The notes under the pieces: model-generated
Seen by the model: the letters and a program-made list of their open reading frames with translations, nothing else
The model's database searches: none
What the model was told of the DNA's origin: nothing
Shown: positions 43,451 to 52,989 of the stretch, piece after piece
Layout of the letters: the number at the start of each line of letters is the position of its first letter
Position numbering within the stretch: position 1 is the stretch's first letter
Program-made: the position numbers and the translations under genes
NCBI GenBank assembly: GCA_965285935.1
Contig: OZ260662.1
Span: 80,662,001-80,726,000, forward strand
Length of the DNA: 64,000 nt
DNA from: Ophelia neglecta
Taxonomy: Eukaryota
Direction: 5' to 3'

Positions 43451-44795
43451 AAAAGTGCTATTGGCTATGTGTTAATCTCGCCTTATATGTTTTCCAATAG
43501 GCTACTACTGAGTTTTATGTGCATGTATTTGGCAAATATTTGTTTGATGTGGATTCATCCATCTGTGTTTCATTAACAAATTGTATCACAGGTATATCGA
43601 AAACGTTAGTGACTTCATGTTCGGTGACAGCATTTTAGAAGTTGAACATGATTAATCGGGTTAATCTGCCAGACGTGCCAAGTTCTCTCTCCTTACACCA
43701 GCTGGGAGACTATCACTTTAAGTTGATGTTCAGTGTGATTTATATTTCAAGATGTTTGTGCTTATTATATTTTATGAATGCGAGGTTTTGCGTTCTAGAA
43801 ATATTGATCTGATTTAACGTGATTTTAAGAAACTTTCTAAAGAATGTTCTATCACTGTCCACTCCCAATTGTATGGTGCACGGCAAAGTTTGTTTGCAAA
43901 ATCAAGTTAACAAAAGAATGGTACATTATTGGTTAAGTGTGATATCTGACAAATCATCAAAATCGACAAACATATTGTTTACAGTTCTTTTCAAATAACG
44001 TGAAAATGGAGTATTTAGTTTTAATTACATGGCTGTTGAATGTGAAATCTGTTTTGGGCCACTGTGGTCTGTCAAATGTGTGGTAAAAGCAAAATGAGAA
44101 TAATTATAATCAGAATAGCATAAAGATGGTAGTAGGCAAAAATAAAAGATATGCAATTCAGAATCGGCTCAGAGAAATTAACAACACCAAACAATGTGTA
44201 AATCACCTAGTTTTTAAAACAGTGCCTGCTAAATAAATCAACGCTATTCTGTGGATAGGGTGATATATTGTAAATTTAGATGTGGCAATCGTGAATCTGC
44301 AAAATGGATATTGATGTTGGAGAAGTTGTTAAAACCGAGTTTGTCAAAATTTCCGTAATCAATATTACAAACATTTTCTATGCAAATATCTAGCCATTTA
44401 GTTATTGGACCACCAAATGCAGCTTTGTTGTGATAATACTATCTTACTTTCTTTTAAAGGGTTTCTTTTTGGTGTAAATGTGTGTTTTTACATACGGGTA
44501 TTTTTAATTACATTTTGTTATCTATTTGATGTTTAAGCTTCATACCTAGTGTATGGTTAAAATACTTATATACTACCTGCCATATGTTGGAATATGCATA
44601 TGTAATAGTTGTTTCCATTCCCTCATACACTGAGAGGGGTCTCTGTATGTAATGATCAAACTCTAAAACTCCAAAAAAAGTATGAATACGTAATAGGCCA
44701 GTGCCAATTCCTGTGCGCATAATTGGGATTTTGAAAATTCTGAACATGAGCTCATCATTTTATTCACGGACAAGTGGTGGCTATCTGGCTATTGA

Positions 44796-47700
44796 CTAAC
44801 AGAAGAGGAAGCTGGCGGGGTCGGTCCTGACTCCGTAGTAGTCCACCTGGTAATGTATATGATCTGTCATCCCCGTGCCATAACAGCCACAATGGAGTCC
44901 CACATGGTTAGCGATATGTTGGCCTCTTGTTACTCGCTGACCGATCAGACTGGCAATAGGCTCACAGTAGAAAATCATCACCACGTGGCCTGCGAAGACA
45001 AATCATGGACCTCATAGTTATATTATACAATTGAACAACGTTCAGACCACCGATAAGGCTCGTTGACTCTATCACTGTTACAAAATAAGTACCACCGCTT
45101 TAGCCAATGGGAAAAGTTCCAGTTAAGTTCATATCTCTCCATTTAAAAACACAGTTGCTCAAACATTGTTGCTACTTAAAGGTGCAAGGAGCTTTTTTTT
45201 AATATTTGTATTATATTATTTTAAAAATAATAAGAACGCAACAATTAGCATTTCATAATACACAACATGGTATAATTATGATGGAACCAAAATGTATCTC
45301 TTTTATTGTGTCATATCACTCTATGGAATGTATGTATATTAACTACCAGTAGGGATACCTGTGAAATAGTAATTTCTATAAAAAAAAAAGATTTGGATGA
45401 AATAGGCGTTTACGATTATTTGTATTGTGACAAACTGAAACCATCTTACAGATTAATTTATTTCAACGTTCACTTCAGGTTTTTCATAATTTCCCCGTCA
45501 AAGAAACTTAGGTATTTTTTGTCGTACTATGAATACTTCGGTTATTTTCTTGTTGATTTCTACTGCATGAATTGCTACATGCAATATTGTATGTGACCAA
45601 TTTCCGATATTTCTATATATAAAGCATCGATATGACTTACAAAATTTGAAAAGAAAAGGAAGTACATGTATATAAATTAGATCCCACGTACTTTTGATTT
45701 GGTTTACATGTTTCAAATCGAAAAAATATTATACCTCACTTAAAAGATTGAATTTAAAAAGATTGTGATTTGATCCAAGTAAGATTATAAAAGGTTCGTG
45801 ATTGATAAGTAAAAAAAAGGTATTTTGTCAATCAAAACTATTGGTGAACCATATAGTTACCTACAGTGTATTTGATCAAATGGCAACCTCTTTCCGACTA
45901 AAGTGCGTTGGCGTTTGCTGAGATATTGATAAAAAATTTCGGAAATAAAATGTCGACATCTGATATTTCACTAAATGAATGAATCTGCAAATATTTTTGG
46001 GTATCAACAACAGAGACAGACCTACTCAGTACTGGAAGTGTTATCTAAGTTTTACCATACTGAGCCTATCACATTACTAACCTGCCCATATCCCAGTACC
46101 GGTGAACAACATTCCCGTGTCGCAGCAACTCCCGTTGCCATAGGGACGGGCTTTTCGTACCAGTGTTCCGTCAAATGGAGCGTACACAAGTGCCCCTCGG
46201 TTACATTTGACATCCCAACCAGTGTGTGCCCTGGTCCCTCTGGCAGTAAAAAGTTATGATACAAAAACTCGACAGTGTTTAACGAATCTTTATAAAAAAT
46301 AACGAGTCATATAGGGGCATGTGACCTGTGAAGTCCCGCACTAAATTCACGGGCATGAGCTTAAAGGTTTAGCATTTGTGTTTCTTATAAAAATGGCTTG
46401 TCGCAATCTATATAACATTGTTCGGTAAATAATCCAAAGACGTTTAACCATATTATTTATTATTATTAAACTTATACAATTTATATAGCGCACATTCCGG
46501 ACTAACCAATCACAAGCGCCTTACATGAACATGGCAACCATCGGATAAGAACGAGCAAACAACACGAAGCCTAAGATTGAACATATCATCCAGGCATATC
46601 ATTATCCATCTCGTTTCTAGATTGGTCAGCCTTTATCGCCACAGGTGCTGTGCCTTTCAAAGACTGCATAGCACAATTTTGTTCTGCTATGTCCCTTTCC
46701 GTTTTTTAGGTACTCAGCCCCTCAGAATATTTCGTCAATCCTCGCATTCTCTACTATGCGAGTGCGGAGTAATGAGGAACCTGCGTGGGCCTTTCATCGG
46801 GGCTGTACGTTGTTGTGGTTTATTTACCTGATCATTTAGCTTAAATACAAATGGATCAATTTAAAAAATAATTAATTAATGTAATTCTGAGAAATGTTCC
46901 AGTCTCGGAAAAAATGTACATCAGGTCTATCATCAAGATGATAACCGTAATACCATTTCGATGTAGACACATTGGAAAGAAAAAAAGGCCTGGTAGCCGT
47001 ATAGGCCTATAACATATATATGCTGTTGTTCTATTTGGAACCTACATGTATGTCACCGACTGAACTACCTGACCCCTATAATGACTAGCTGGGGTTACAG
47101 CTAAAGATACACAAACTTATCCATGTCCCTTTAATAAAAATGTAGCCCGTGAGCTGAGAAAAAGTGTCACTGCGTGTATGAAGTAACTTTTCCTACATTT
47201 TTATTCGAATTTCAGTTATCTATGTTATCTTGATTTCATTAGAATCAATTTCCGTTGAACTATAAATAAATGAATATGAAGTAAACATGATTCAGTGAAA
47301 AAATAAACAACTTTACATATTATAAAGCACTATTGTCTTGGGGAGTTGCTCCAAACGTTCGCTCGCATTTTGATCGAAATTAACCGTTATTGCCCGTTCC
47401 TTTATTACATAGAACGCAAACATAATTATATAACAGAATATATGCATTTAATTACACTATAGGTGGTTACATAAACCTTACTAATATACTGATATATTTC
47501 TACAGCACCGATAAAATAATTTCTTGCCTGCCCGCGCCATAATTGCCACATCCGTATGAATCACACGTTCTTTTCTGGTTGGATGAAAATGATGAGCACA
47601 AGTTTGCAGTGCACAATCCTTCACCTAGTAAATATTATAACATTGTCGCATTAATTCAAAAACACAACTAATATAATTACATAGTCTCCTGCGCACAGGA

Positions 47701-49933
47701 GGCTCAAGATTGGAGGATACCGCGTTCACATCTACCTTTGCGTCTATCTTACGATATTCCGCGACAAAACAGTAGAGATAAGTAGCTCCACATTAATTTG
47801 GCCTCCTTTGTCATTTCGTTGTTATATTTCTGTTTTCCTCACATGGAGCAAATATAGGCATCACATGTAGGCGAGGCCCCTATCCCCTGCTAAATATGTT
47901 TAACTATAATTTTTATATATAGGTTCCAGCGGACAGGCGCCTCTTGGCAATTATGCATGTATAGGAAAAATGGGAGAAAAAACACTGGCAACCTTGTGAC
48001 TCGATAAATATAAATTGTCGGGATTTGTCGGAGGTTTGGAAATACATATTATTATTATTTTCTAGTGAAACTAGTGTGTTTGAAACAGTATTACCTATAC
48101 CCTTGATTTGTTGACAATTACCCCTGTGCCATAACACCATTCAGTGCGTTCGCTTTTATTCTCTGTGTCAAGTATTCACGAGTTTCGTGCTATTAAAACC
48201 AAAAATTCGCAAGAATTCACCACTCTCATTTGGTCGCATACGCGAGATCACCAGAATTAATTGGCCGTTCTCATTCGCACGCATACGCGGAGTCTGTATC
48301 CGATTGGTAATCTCTGGCATACGTCGCATATGCCAACATACGCATATTTTGGAATACGAGGCAAATCGGTCTTTTTTACGCAATGAAAAGGTTGAAGACC
48401 AAAATCCCGTAGGAATCCATGGGTGAGAAATTTACTCTCTCGCGTCTCTCCCCGTGCTCCTTAGAGTATGGATATACATGGGTACCTAGATTAACAGAAT
48501 CGGCTGTGTATTCCCATGACCAACTTGAGAGTGCTATAATCAAATGAACATGTCCGGTGACCAGGGAGGTAAGCCTAATTGTAAAGTCGTGGGGTAGGTT
48601 TATCAGCTCACATAAACTCCAGCATATATTATAAACTCCTAGCTTAAACTTAAATTTAAGGTCCGTATAACATTTTTGTCGGTTTGAATATTGTTTCCTA
48701 CTTTACCTGCTCCACCACAATGCTGAGGACCAGACAAATAATCACCATGGGCAAAGGCTGCCTGGAAAAACAACCAATACTCAACGTTAGTACTCAAAAG
48801 TCATCAATGCCCAAGTATACACTTAGGGGTAATTATCTGTCAATAAGTGTAGACGAGGAAGGGAGTGTACATGAACACTGGTTACACGTCATTAAGATAT
48901 ATAAGACATTCCATCCATTCTCTTAATTCATCGAAGTTCTTTTCACAAACTTTAATTTGATTTTAAAATTTAGAAGCCCATACTTGGCCATTATATGTTA
49001 TTTCATGCCAGGCTCCACTCCTCGTGCGATAGTCGTAACATTGTCCTGGGCTGATAGACCCGACAATCCCGCAGGAGGTGCTAGCGCAACTACGTACATT
49101 CACCTGCAACAACATTGAAGAAAATACATTAGGGCCTTGTTCCCTTCAGGAGGAACAGAGGTATCAGCTAACCCACTCGGGCGGTTATGATGGGCCGCTT
49201 GTTCATTAGGCCACGAACAACAACAAACTTTGAATGTCTATAATTTTTTTTATTTACAAGTAACGTAATATGGTCTGAAAGTGATACTTATTATTTAACA
49301 CATTAATTTATCCCTGTGCGTAATCTGTATGAACAAACGCTGCTACAAAAGTGGGAAAAATACATTGAGTGCTAAGGAATCTGTAGGAAACATGAACAGT
49401 GAAACAGTATATTGGCAGAAAGAGGTTCTCAAGAGTAGATTTATGTGTAGGTTTATCATTGATAAGAATTTTGTTCCGTAAATGTGTTTGTACACAACTC
49501 CATGTCATCGTCGTCCACATTGATTAATACCAATTTGGTTTCCTAATCTGATCTCCAAGTGTGGGTGAACAAAGTGTGATTGAAACCGGTTTCAGGCGCA
49601 TTCTTATTCTAACATGCGTCATTTTTTACATTAACATGTAAGTAGGCTTTAAATAATTATCCAATGTATAATAAATAAATAATCTGGGTTTTCTGAAAAT
49701 TGATGACTTGATCTGTACAAGCAACCACCAAATAACCCTTTAGTTGAAAATGAACCTGCTGGCATTAAATGTCATTGTAGTGGTAGATGGATTTGGCAGT
49801 GTTGATGATAAATTCATAAGCATAAGAAGGTGTAAATAAATACCGTTCCTCCACCTCTTGGAGCCCCGCATGAACACGTTCGTCCTAGGGCGTTCCCTAT
49901 TAGAACAACCAAAATGAAGACTTGAATCATCAT
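44796..49933 (-). CDS. Secreted SH3b-LECT2/M23 fusion protein (about 237 aa, six exons)
   Basis: Exons 49933-49844 (signal peptide MMIQVFILVVLIGNALG), 49103-48984 (VNVRSCASTSCGIVGSISPGQCYDYRTRSGAWHEITYNGQ), 48761-48707 (AAFAHGDYL; completes SH3b), 47624-47528 (NLCSSFSSNQKRTCDSYGCGNYGAGR, GC donor), 46239-46082 (HTGWD...VYAPFDG) and 44989-44796 (MIFY...HIH...DPASFLFC*). Phases 0,0,1,2,1 join in frame. Confidence 0.9.
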
Positions 49934-50778: not shown

Positions 50779-51689
50779 TATAAATAAATAAATAAAAACA
50801 AAACAATCTCAAATATTGCTCATCTTTGTTCCTACTTCAAGTTCAAAAAAATCAGATCTACACAAGATTTTCAACAGGAATACGATTAAACTGAGTTACA
50901 GCTGTATGAACAATTTGAAAAATATAATAGATGGACACAACAAGAGCCAACTCGATAAAGTGAAAAAGAAGGAAAATAGTAATGCCAAGAGCTGTAATTG
51001 CCAGAACAAGAAAGTATGTCCATTGGACGGAAAATGCCAGCGACAAAGTGTAATATATCAAGCCAAAGTTGCACCCAAATCAAAAGATTTCCAACCAGAA
51101 ACATACATCGGACTAACAGAGAATAGTTTCAAAGTGAGATATAGAAATCATAAAGCTTCCTTTAAAAACAAAAGGCAAAAGAATTGTACGGAACTTAGCA
51201 AATTTATATGGCAACTAAAAGACGCGGATGTGGACTTTGATATTGACTGGAAAATAATGAAGCAGGCAAACTCATACCAACCGTCCACAAACAGATGCAA
51301 TCTTTGCATGTGGGAGAAGTATTATATTATATGCTGTCCAGAAGAAGCTACACTAAATAAAAGAACAGAACTAGTAACTGCATGTAGACATGCAAAAAAG
51401 TATTTGATAATGAACTATGAAAGCGGAAAAAATAGGTGAAAATAGGTGTAAAGTAAATTAGTGTCATTTTGTTGTTGTTGTTGTTGAGAATCTCCCCCCC
51501 CCCCCCGCCATTTGGGGAGATTTTAGTGATTGTGACATCACGTTATGACGATATTGTTATTTGAACGTTTATAAGATTCTGAGCTATGTATTCCCTGATG
51601 AATGGCTGGCTAAGCCAGTTATGAAACTTGAAGTAGGAACAAAGATGAGCAATATTTGAGATTGTTTTGTTTTTATTTATTTATTTATA
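50779..51689 (+). mobile_element. 5'-truncated Penelope-like retroelement (GIY-YIG endonuclease end) bounded by 65-bp inverted repeats
   Basis: ORF 50816-51439: LHKIFNRNTIKLSYSCM, CNC..CPLDGKC, VIYQA..YIGLT..FKVRYRNH, CNLC..EK, LNKR.E..CRH. Positions 50779-50843 are the exact reverse complement of 51625-51689. Confidence 0.9.
51591..51639 (+). ncRNA. Minimal type I hammerhead ribozyme in the Penelope-like element 3' region
   Basis: Stem I TTCC/GGAA; core CTGATGA; stem II ATGGCTGGC-TAA-GCCAGTTAT; GAAA; short palindromic stem III ACTT-G-AAGT; cleavage triplet GTA ending at 51635. Confidence 0.85.
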
Positions 51690-52989
51690 ACGCTCTGTAC
51701 AAACTGTACATTGAGCACTTTTGGAGTTTTTTATGGTGCAGAACATTGAAAACATTGTATTATATTATATATATGTATATATATTATTTTGTCCGTAGCT
51801 TTGTTATTTAACGTAAATATATTGTCGTCTTCTCTACCAATACCCTACTGTTTCATATTCTACTTTTATGTTCGATGGGTTTTTTTTAGGACGATGGGTT
51901 TTACTATTACCCACTGAAAAAAATTGCAAGAGCTCCGTGAAGTAGCCAGTAAACAAAATGGCTTCACCTCCGCGAAATTAATTTACATTTAGTGGTAAAC
52001 TTTGTATCGGATATTAATAAATTAGCATATGTACTCGAACTCACACCCGGGGTCCTACAAATAAACTTAAGTAGGCTACGCGAGTCAGTCAGTCGACCCG
52101 GGAACAAACTACATGTAGCGTGGCATGTGAAGTGCCGTATTAAATGGCGTCCACTATACTAGCTTCGGCAATCGTTCATATATAATATGGCTTAGCAAGT
52201 TTGGGTCAACAGCGTTATTATAAAAGATCCTATACGAAAGCAATCATTTCAAAATCAATCATTTTCTAATTTACTGCAAGCAAGGGCTTCTATGATCATT
52301 TATCTCTCAATACACACGAAAACCACAGCCTGTTCATGAATTTCGGCGATTTTGAAAATGTCCACTTCGATCGAGGTACTATTCTCATTTATTTTGCGCA
52401 TTTCTCCGTTGGTTGCAGAAAATATATATCAAAAATTGACCAGTTTCGGTCAATTTCACATAATATTTCACCCCTTAGACCATAATTGTGTTGAACTGTG
52501 CTCAATTTCTCAAACTCCATTCTATGTCAGGGTTTAACAGGCAAAATCACTGCTAAAATTGGCCTCGCAGCCGGCGTTCTTGCCCGAATTTGCCTTTTCT
52601 TTGGGGAATTTTTGACGACTTAATAGGCGTGGGAGGGGGGGGGGGGGCATTTTAGCATCTTCAGTACTGTACGTCAAACTTGCAATGTAATGACTTTTTG
52701 AAGTCACTTGTTTTAATTTTACATAGTGTTGGATATATCAATCGCGCATAAAATACCGGCGGGCAATAATGCTTGGAATAGACAGCTAATATCATAGTGA
52801 AATGGGACACTTGTGTAAAATGTTGTGAAAACCCACCACAATATTCAGAGCAAACGCAATGCATGACATTTCTTGGTAAGTGGGTGCAAAAATGGTCTGT
52901 TGAATTGAATATATGTATTCATGAACAAACAAGAATGCAATCTTTACGTACCTGAGAAGCAGCTGTCCCCTTATATTACTCCACTGTGC

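Follow-up and report, generated by a model that had tools for sequence, protein, structure and literature searches.

The window analysed here, a stretch of 64,000 nucleotides (nt) from Ophelia neglecta (assembly GCA_965285935.1, contig OZ260662.1, positions 80,662,001 to 80,726,000 of the forward strand; C2:80.66-80.73 Mb in the genome), carries a gene that joins an N-terminal SH3b domain to a LECT2-type domain of the M23 fold. The gene is intact and is one of three paralogs, and its product is a disulfide-rich protein of two domains. By analogy with better characterized proteins, we put the probability at roughly 0.65 that this product is a secreted, SH3b-targeted LECT2-type protein that binds bacteria or acts against them in immunity or bacterivory. 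The pairing of SH3b with LECT2 appears to be undescribed: no description was found in the literature, NCBI or UniProt, in searches whose reach was bounded by a word index and by length windows.

A six-exon gene spanning both domains

The window sequence is free of N. The gene lies on the minus strand (49933..44796) and comprises six exons with 714 coding nt, corresponding to 237 codons and the stop. Its features are as follows.

49844..49933, minus strand: exon 1 (90 nt, 30 amino acids (aa); 3' end in phase 0, GT donor), with the start codon, the signal peptide (MMIQVFILVVLIGNALG, judged by eye) and the RTCSCG strand that opens the SH3b module
48984..49103, minus strand: exon 2 (120 nt, 40 aa), the SH3b (SH3_3) core, residues 31-70, with three of the six cysteines of the SH3b module
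48707..48761, minus strand: exon 3 (55 nt; 3' end in phase 1), with the final SH3b strand (AAFAHGDYL), the sixth cysteine and the Gly-rich linker
47528..47624, minus strand: exon 4 (97 nt; GC donor at 47527-47526), the N-terminal loop of the LECT2 domain (LCTANLCSSFSSNQKRTCDSYGCGNYGAG), carrying three of its four cysteines
46082..46239, minus strand: exon 5 (158 nt), the first half of the LECT2/M23 domain, with the zinc motif HTGWD (His126, Asp130) and VYAPFDG
44796..44989, minus strand: exon 6 (194 nt including TAG), the second half of the LECT2/M23 domain, with FYCEP, His202, the DHIH motif (His217, His219) and the stop TAG at 44798-44796
44759..44764, minus strand: a hexamer, AATAAA, resembling a polyadenylation signal and starting 32 nt beyond the stop, as read from the sequence

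The introns fall in phases 0, 0, 1, 2 and 1, with AG at every acceptor and GT at four of the five donors. The remaining donor, that of intron 4, reads CAG/GCAAGA and defines a GC-AG intron; no variant letter was seen at this GC in DNA contigs (three runs, one sample). A search for sequencing runs containing this DNA gave these three and no RNA run. Over the 5.45-kb gene stretch, DNA contigs of one sample showed 20 differences, all of them outside the exons, and no joints. The initial annotation of this DNA had proposed six exons spliced into a secreted protein of about 237 aa, and all six exons were confirmed at the proposed places, with correct phases. Translation of the individual exons likewise reproduced the peptide strings it had quoted (VNVRSCASTSCGIVGSISPG and AAFAHGDYL), the GGAGEG linker at the junction and both zinc motifs (HTGWD and HIH).

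A family-profile search of the genome (762 Mb) identified exactly three family loci, all on C2. In each of them an SH3b exon is located 1.8-2.7 kb upstream of the LECT2 exon and on the same strand. The two paralogs (L007 and L008) have six exons each, all open, and exons 2, 4, 5 and 6 match the window copy in length (exon 4 is 97 nt in both), while exon 3 measures 55 and 61 nt and has AG/GT borders. All splice sites of the paralogs are canonical, with a GT donor at intron 4. Between paralogs, synonymous divergence (pS) is saturated at 0.60-0.89 (0.60-0.79 in SH3b exon 2), indicating that the copies are old. Nonsynonymous divergence (pN) is low by comparison, at 0.19-0.35 in the SH3b exon and 0.17-0.22 in the LECT2 exons, which indicates that the SH3b and LECT2 parts are both under purifying selection. 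A Pfam M23 search of the whole genome gave no match, the domain being split over exons. A third genomic match to SH3_3, at C2:89.98 Mb, was rejected as an ordinary eukaryotic SH3 exon.

The window exons were used singly as queries, and statements about full-length proteins rest on natural homologs. Among 1.84 billion representative proteins, the best match to exon 5 was P0001, a protein of 240 aa with 67% identity that scores above the Pfam cut-offs for both SH3_3 (50 bits) and Peptidase_M23 (30.6 bits). P0001 and, in a second round, a family alignment served as queries and recovered about 18 proteins of 206-262 aa with both domains; Peptidase_M23 scores of the full-length homologs (30-38 bits) are above the cut-off. 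All come from JGI metagenome-type and Logan SRA assemblies and none is meaningfully named. Each homolog is a single uninterrupted open reading frame (ORF), alone on a contig of 0.9-1.8 kb; ORFs on such transcript-like contigs encode 236-262 aa. Four of six homolog contigs, recovered from different samples, share the same start base, and one ends just past AATAAA-like signals, so that these contigs look like mRNAs. When the homologs were aligned by tblastn to the window gene and to both paralogs, the alignments broke precisely at the exon borders. The SH3b-LECT2 fusion is real. The initial annotation had left room for exons 1-3 and exons 4-6 to belong to different genes; at the level of the family, single ORFs of homologs run across the SH3b-LECT2 junction.

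One homolog, P0084 (262 aa, JGI), is extended at its N terminus by sequence that looks like the tail of another SH3b repeat, which suggests tandem-SH3b variants or a longer isoform. A database search with the SH3b part alone returned the query alone, an outcome that reflects the word-index limit and is uninformative about relatives. Look-alikes from the protein atlas were generic bacterial SH3_3 and M23 clusters and were set aside as offering no evidence of kinship.

The SH3b module and the LECT2-type zinc domain

Exon 2 alone matched Pfam SH3_3 (PF08239) at E 2.5e-5 over profile positions 4-44 of 54. Its score of 24.8 bits is below the cut-off of 27 bits because the SH3_3 domain is split over exons; in a six-frame search of the genome exon 2 reached 27.6 bits, above the cut-off, and full-length homologs scored 37-50 bits, save P0091 at 24.3. 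Against solved structures, exon 2 matched SH3b domains from wall hydrolases of Clostridium and Bacillus (E 0.002-0.05), with the best matches in the Protein Data Bank (PDB) being 2kq8 and 2kyb (E 0.002-0.004). The family profile matched solved SH3b domains at E 1e-7 to 2e-4 and placed the exon 3 stretch on their C-terminal part. The SH3b of the family contains six cysteines.

The fold was assessed on an AlphaFold2 model of the homolog P0088 (237 aa), which shares 69% identity with the window protein over the exons aligned by tblastn. The model was built from a 17-sequence alignment and has a mean predicted local distance difference test score (pLDDT) of 79.7, with values of 83-90 over most of the SH3b barrel. 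In structural comparison with VIA-align, model residues ~17-91 matched 3pvq (Z 10.2), 9ovi (Z 10.1, 66 of 67 residues, 1.9 Å) and the phage endolysin Psm (4krt, Z 9.2), while the lysostaphin SH3b and eukaryotic SH3 domains gave Z 6.5 and Z 6.2, respectively. Strand E21-25 of the model, equivalent to the RTCSCG strand encoded by exon 1, belongs to the SH3b barrel. On this predicted structure the module is of SH3_3 type, matching the SH3b domains of Bacillota cell-wall hydrolases at Z 9-10. The Pfam score and the modelled barrel agree with the earlier identification of the N-terminal module as a bacterial-type SH3b.

Among solved structures, exon 5 matched human LECT2 only (5b0h and 9non, E 4e-8), and Pfam Peptidase_M23 was matched by exon 5 (E 4e-4) and exon 6 (E 0.038) at opposite ends of the profile. 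The family profile found LECT2 at E 5e-25, compared with E 0.2-1 for classical M23 enzymes, and aligned exon 4 with human LECT2 residues 4-30. Residues 92-235 of the P0088 model matched human LECT2 (5b0h) with Z 21.0 and a root-mean-square deviation of 1.7 Å over 133 of 133 residues, whereas the best enzyme match of this half was StM23 at Z 15.4 (both with VIA-align); Foldseek likewise returned LECT2 as the top match of the model. Judged by sequence and by the modelled fold, which agree in giving LECT2 as the best match, the domain belongs to the LECT2-type branch of the M23 fold. The LECT2/M23 domain recognized in the initial annotation is thus supported by Pfam, by the match to human LECT2 and by the fold of the homolog model.

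The zinc ligands of M23 enzymes are the His and Asp of an H(x)nD motif and the second His of HxH (PMC9662197), and human LECT2 keeps this triad as His35, Asp39 and His120 (PMC8039541). HTGWD and the second His of DHIH align with these three LECT2 residues. The zinc triad of the window protein (His126, Asp130 and His219), together with His217, the first His of HxH, is invariant in 17 family members. Catalysis by M23 enzymes also needs the first HxH His and a further His ~30 residues upstream, His260 in LytM (PMC9662197). In the sequence alignment the position of LytM His260 falls on Cys/Glu within FYCEP in the window gene, versus FYIKP in LECT2, and across the family it reads CEP, CDP, CHP, ANP, AYP, VEP, SEP or AKP. 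His202, within an ATH motif, is invariant in the family and corresponds to Leu in human LECT2. Cys98, Cys109, Cys114 and Cys133 align with LECT2 Cys7, Cys18, Cys23 and Cys42, and all four are kept; in the N-terminal loop of LECT2 we take the four cysteines to form two disulfides. Conservation of these loop cysteines argues against an open substrate groove. In what is presumably the third disulfide of LECT2, the first cysteine is replaced in the window protein.

The window protein therefore resembles vertebrate LECT2 (PDB 5b0h) in being its best match in both sequence and fold, in the His/Asp/His zinc ligands, in the four N-terminal cysteines and in lacking the second catalytic His; both domain introns are placed as in catfish, with a phase-1 intron in front. 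Vertebrate LECT2, however, is a stand-alone protein of ~130 residues, whereas the window family (three paralogs, ~18 homologs) adds an N-terminal SH3b of ~70 residues. The window protein differs further in six other cysteines, in the invariant His202 and in its presence as three paralogs.

With lysostaphin and ALE-1 the protein shares the combination of an M23-fold zinc domain and a bacterial SH3-type domain, a short linker, and the HxxxD and HxH motifs. However, the domain order is opposite, the SH3b is of SH3_3 type and compares with that of lysostaphin at the lower Z score given above, the M23 half is nearer to LECT2 than to any enzyme, and the gene is an intron-bearing animal gene. The window protein also lacks the second catalytic His, which is His329 in lysostaphin (Lss) and His260 in LytM. 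The description 'lysostaphin-like' in the initial annotation thus fits the pairing of domains and not a demonstrated activity, given the absent second catalytic His and the retained LECT2 loop cysteines.

These features bear on whether the protein could be a true peptidoglycan endopeptidase that cleaves peptide cross-links at its zinc site, with another residue replacing the missing catalytic His. Such an activity seems unlikely, although the zinc triad and the first HxH His are invariant in 17 members, an extra His (His202, Leu in human LECT2) is invariant as well, active hydrolases typically come with a wall-binding domain (PMC9662197), and the M23 fold gives Z 14-15 against the active enzymes StM23, LytM and lysostaphin. 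The residue aligned with LytM His260 is variable in the family and the site resembles that of LECT2, the four cysteines of the LECT2 N-terminal stretch are all kept, and LECT2 itself is without known enzymatic activity and is described in a review as having an extra loop that protrudes from its active centre (PMC8174566, PMC9662197). The more specific proposal that the second catalytic His has been relocated to His202, making the protein a working animal-encoded, SH3b-targeted endopeptidase and a counterpart of lysostaphin, is slightly more doubtful. If it were true, the ancestor of vertebrate LECT2 would have been an active bacteriolytic enzyme, and both the targeting domain and the activity would have been lost since. 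By analogy with LECT2, we consider classical peptidase activity less likely than a role in wall binding or against bacteria.

Origins of the two halves

Two introns interrupt the LECT2 domain of the window gene: the first, in phase 2, lies in the Arg codon after GNYGAx, and the second, in phase 1, lies in a Gly codon five residues before FY. Both are the same in channel catfish LECT2, and the two genes also have in common a phase-1 intron ahead of the LECT2-domain exon. These common positions and phases indicate that the LECT2 half was inherited from a common animal ancestor and was not newly acquired. A maximum likelihood tree of the LECT2 domain was rooted at its midpoint and contained long bacterial branches, with the three copies of the window genome left out. 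In this tree the SH3b-bearing proteins formed one clade (support 98/97) whose sister was P0023, a transcript without SH3b, while vertebrate LECT2 and the bacterial LECT2-like proteins were placed in separate groups.

The borders of SH3b exons 1-3 are in phase 0 and phase 1. We infer that a unit consisting of signal peptide plus SH3b replaced the original first exon at the phase-1 intron, an event that would have placed the signal-peptide and SH3b exons before the phase-1 intron ahead of the LECT2 exons. Outside the family, the closest SH3b relatives found were NlpC/P60 proteins of Bacillota that carry SH3_3 repeats in tandem (35-42% identity). No further SH3b was detected in the window genome by six-frame SH3_3 and family-profile searches or at the lysozyme loci described below. 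From these sequence relationships a bacterial source of the SH3b is plausible.

Bacteria also encode LECT2-type M23 proteins of ~160 aa without the second catalytic His (L018 6001-6492; L033 3001-3441). One of these genes is located on a 111-kb transposase-rich metagenome contig, and its product has a weak LECT2_C (PF26730) match in the precomputed annotation; the other is in Pustulibacterium marinum. The bacterial proteins, including that of P. marinum and P0110, are alike in having a ~160-aa LECT2-type domain that lacks the second catalytic His, and they are 27-37% identical to the window protein over residues 92-237. At least one of them, P0095, also has the N-terminal cysteine pattern of LECT2, and the precomputed annotation of P0110 lists a weak LECT2_C match together with Peptidase_M23. 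Unlike the window family, however, the bacterial proteins are without SH3b and form a separate, long-branched clade. Transfer of the whole gene from bacteria was rejected as the principal explanation, since the bacterial LECT2-like genes are without SH3b and the LECT2 introns are shared with those of a fish, the channel catfish.

LECT2-like domains were also found beside other modules. P0049, an environmental transcript on a 910-nt JGI contig, carries PG_binding_1 in place of SH3b. LECT2-like proteins of sturgeon and paddlefish (P0019 and P0041 are among the LECT2-like proteins with other modules) have a cysteine-rich N-terminal region that resembles beta-defensins by eye, and a newt LECT2-like protein contains repeats of a similar cysteine-rich region. 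Tandem LECT2 domains are present in Myeloid protein 1-like and Trichinella proteins.

Proposed function and significance

N-terminal SH3b domains have been described in animals, in i-type lysozymes of earthworms, enchytraeids and bivalves (PMC11083476) and in mollusc PGRPs (PMC11810698, PMC9570181). In secreted lysozymes and PGRPs of this kind a role of the SH3b in wall recognition has been proposed or shown (PMC11083476, PMC11810698). The SH3b i-type lysozymes Ea-iLys and Ealb-iLys and the PGRP MgPGRP5 are organized like the window protein: behind the signal peptide, an N-terminal SH3b is joined through a short, low-complexity linker to a domain directed at the wall. In the SH3b of the worm lysozyme, too, three disulfides are predicted (PMC11083476, PMC11810698). 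Whereas these animal SH3b effectors carry a destabilase or PGRP domain, the window protein carries a LECT2-type domain instead.

The window genome has at least five i-type lysozyme (destabilase) loci (C1:29.41, C1:29.43, C1:54.63, C9:48.85 and C2:81.35 Mb), two of them in tandem on C1 and one separated from the window gene by only ~0.65 Mb. A search of the ~7-8 kb upstream of five such loci turned up no SH3b-like exon.

We favour the reading in which the window protein is directed at bacteria by its SH3b. In this model the SH3b would anchor the protein to peptidoglycan or some other polymer of the wall, after which the LECT2-type domain would affect the wall or envelope in ways other than classical M23 hydrolysis, namely by binding, agglutination or killing on the pattern of fish LECT2-b. 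The protein may function in immunity or in digesting bacteria that the animal ingests. For fish LECT2-b, both binding to peptidoglycan and lipoteichoic acid and the killing of bacteria are reported in the passage of PMC10034042 that cites Hu et al. 2022. With that work as an experimental precedent, the suggestion in the initial annotation of an ancestral peptidoglycan-related role for LECT2 is reasonable.

Several considerations weigh against this interpretation. Any binding and activity of the family are proposed by analogy, the structure is predicted for P0088 and not for the window protein, and the splicing of the window copy, at all five junctions and at its GC donor, is predicted from genomic DNA. 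SH3b domains can also bind ligands besides peptidoglycan. Finally, vertebrate LECT2 is mainly a receptor ligand, which makes a signalling role possible.

A host-directed signalling protein like vertebrate LECT2, with an SH3b that binds proteins or matrix and has nothing to do with bacteria, would be in keeping with the action of vertebrate LECT2 through host receptors (PMC10034042) and with inheritance of the LECT2 half by descent. We nevertheless regard it as improbable: the SH3b is closest in both sequence and fold to those of cell-wall hydrolases, the known LECT2 receptors are vertebrate ones, and relatives of the domain swap in other bacteria-directed modules (PG_binding_1, and cysteine-rich regions that look defensin-like by eye). 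An error in the gene model, whether two mis-joined neighbours or a copy crippled by its GC donor, is very improbable even though intron 4 has GC versus GT in both paralogs and the junctions of this copy are predicted from DNA, as the same six-exon order occurs in three paralogs, single ORFs of homologs span the junctions, the donor otherwise matches the consensus, and the stretch contains no stops or frameshifts and 0 exonic versus 20 non-coding variants.

The window contains several other candidate genes. Two single-exon paralogous ORFs (52921-53472 and 56775-57281, both on the plus strand) are 26% identical (E 2e-10). In each, a signal-like N-terminus is combined with basic sites that resemble cleavage sites and with a C-terminal six-cysteine block of the form C-x3-C-x2-C-x11-C-x3-C-x8-11-C, and neither has a Pfam match. 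The spacing of their last five cysteines is, we assume, that of CHH/ITP-type neuropeptides. An intronless gene at 15755-17104 (plus strand) encodes a 449-aa glycosyltransferase of family 61 (Pfam E 3e-12); its nearest look-alike clusters in the protein atlas are chlorophyte, annelid and mollusc, with the annelid cluster sharing the most features. Two further plus-strand ORFs, at 50816-51439 and 63345-63815, resemble mobile-element remnants and gave no Pfam match at E 0.01.

For the SH3b-targeted, bacteria-directed protein that we favour, the significance lies chiefly in what it may imply about LECT2. LECT2 has been studied as a vertebrate hepatokine and amyloid protein, and reviews describe it as the only vertebrate protein of the M23 fold, the reason for keeping a disabled bacterial-type peptidase fold being obscure. 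An inherited LECT2 gene joined to a wall-binding module, with relatives that carry PG_binding_1 or defensin-like modules, would provide genomic support for a bacteria-directed origin of LECT2, in agreement with reports that fish LECT2 binds peptidoglycan. In this family a targeting domain and an effector domain are naturally combined in compact form, and the LECT2-type domain would be the third partner, after lysozyme and PGRP, among the SH3b-fused wall effectors of invertebrates.

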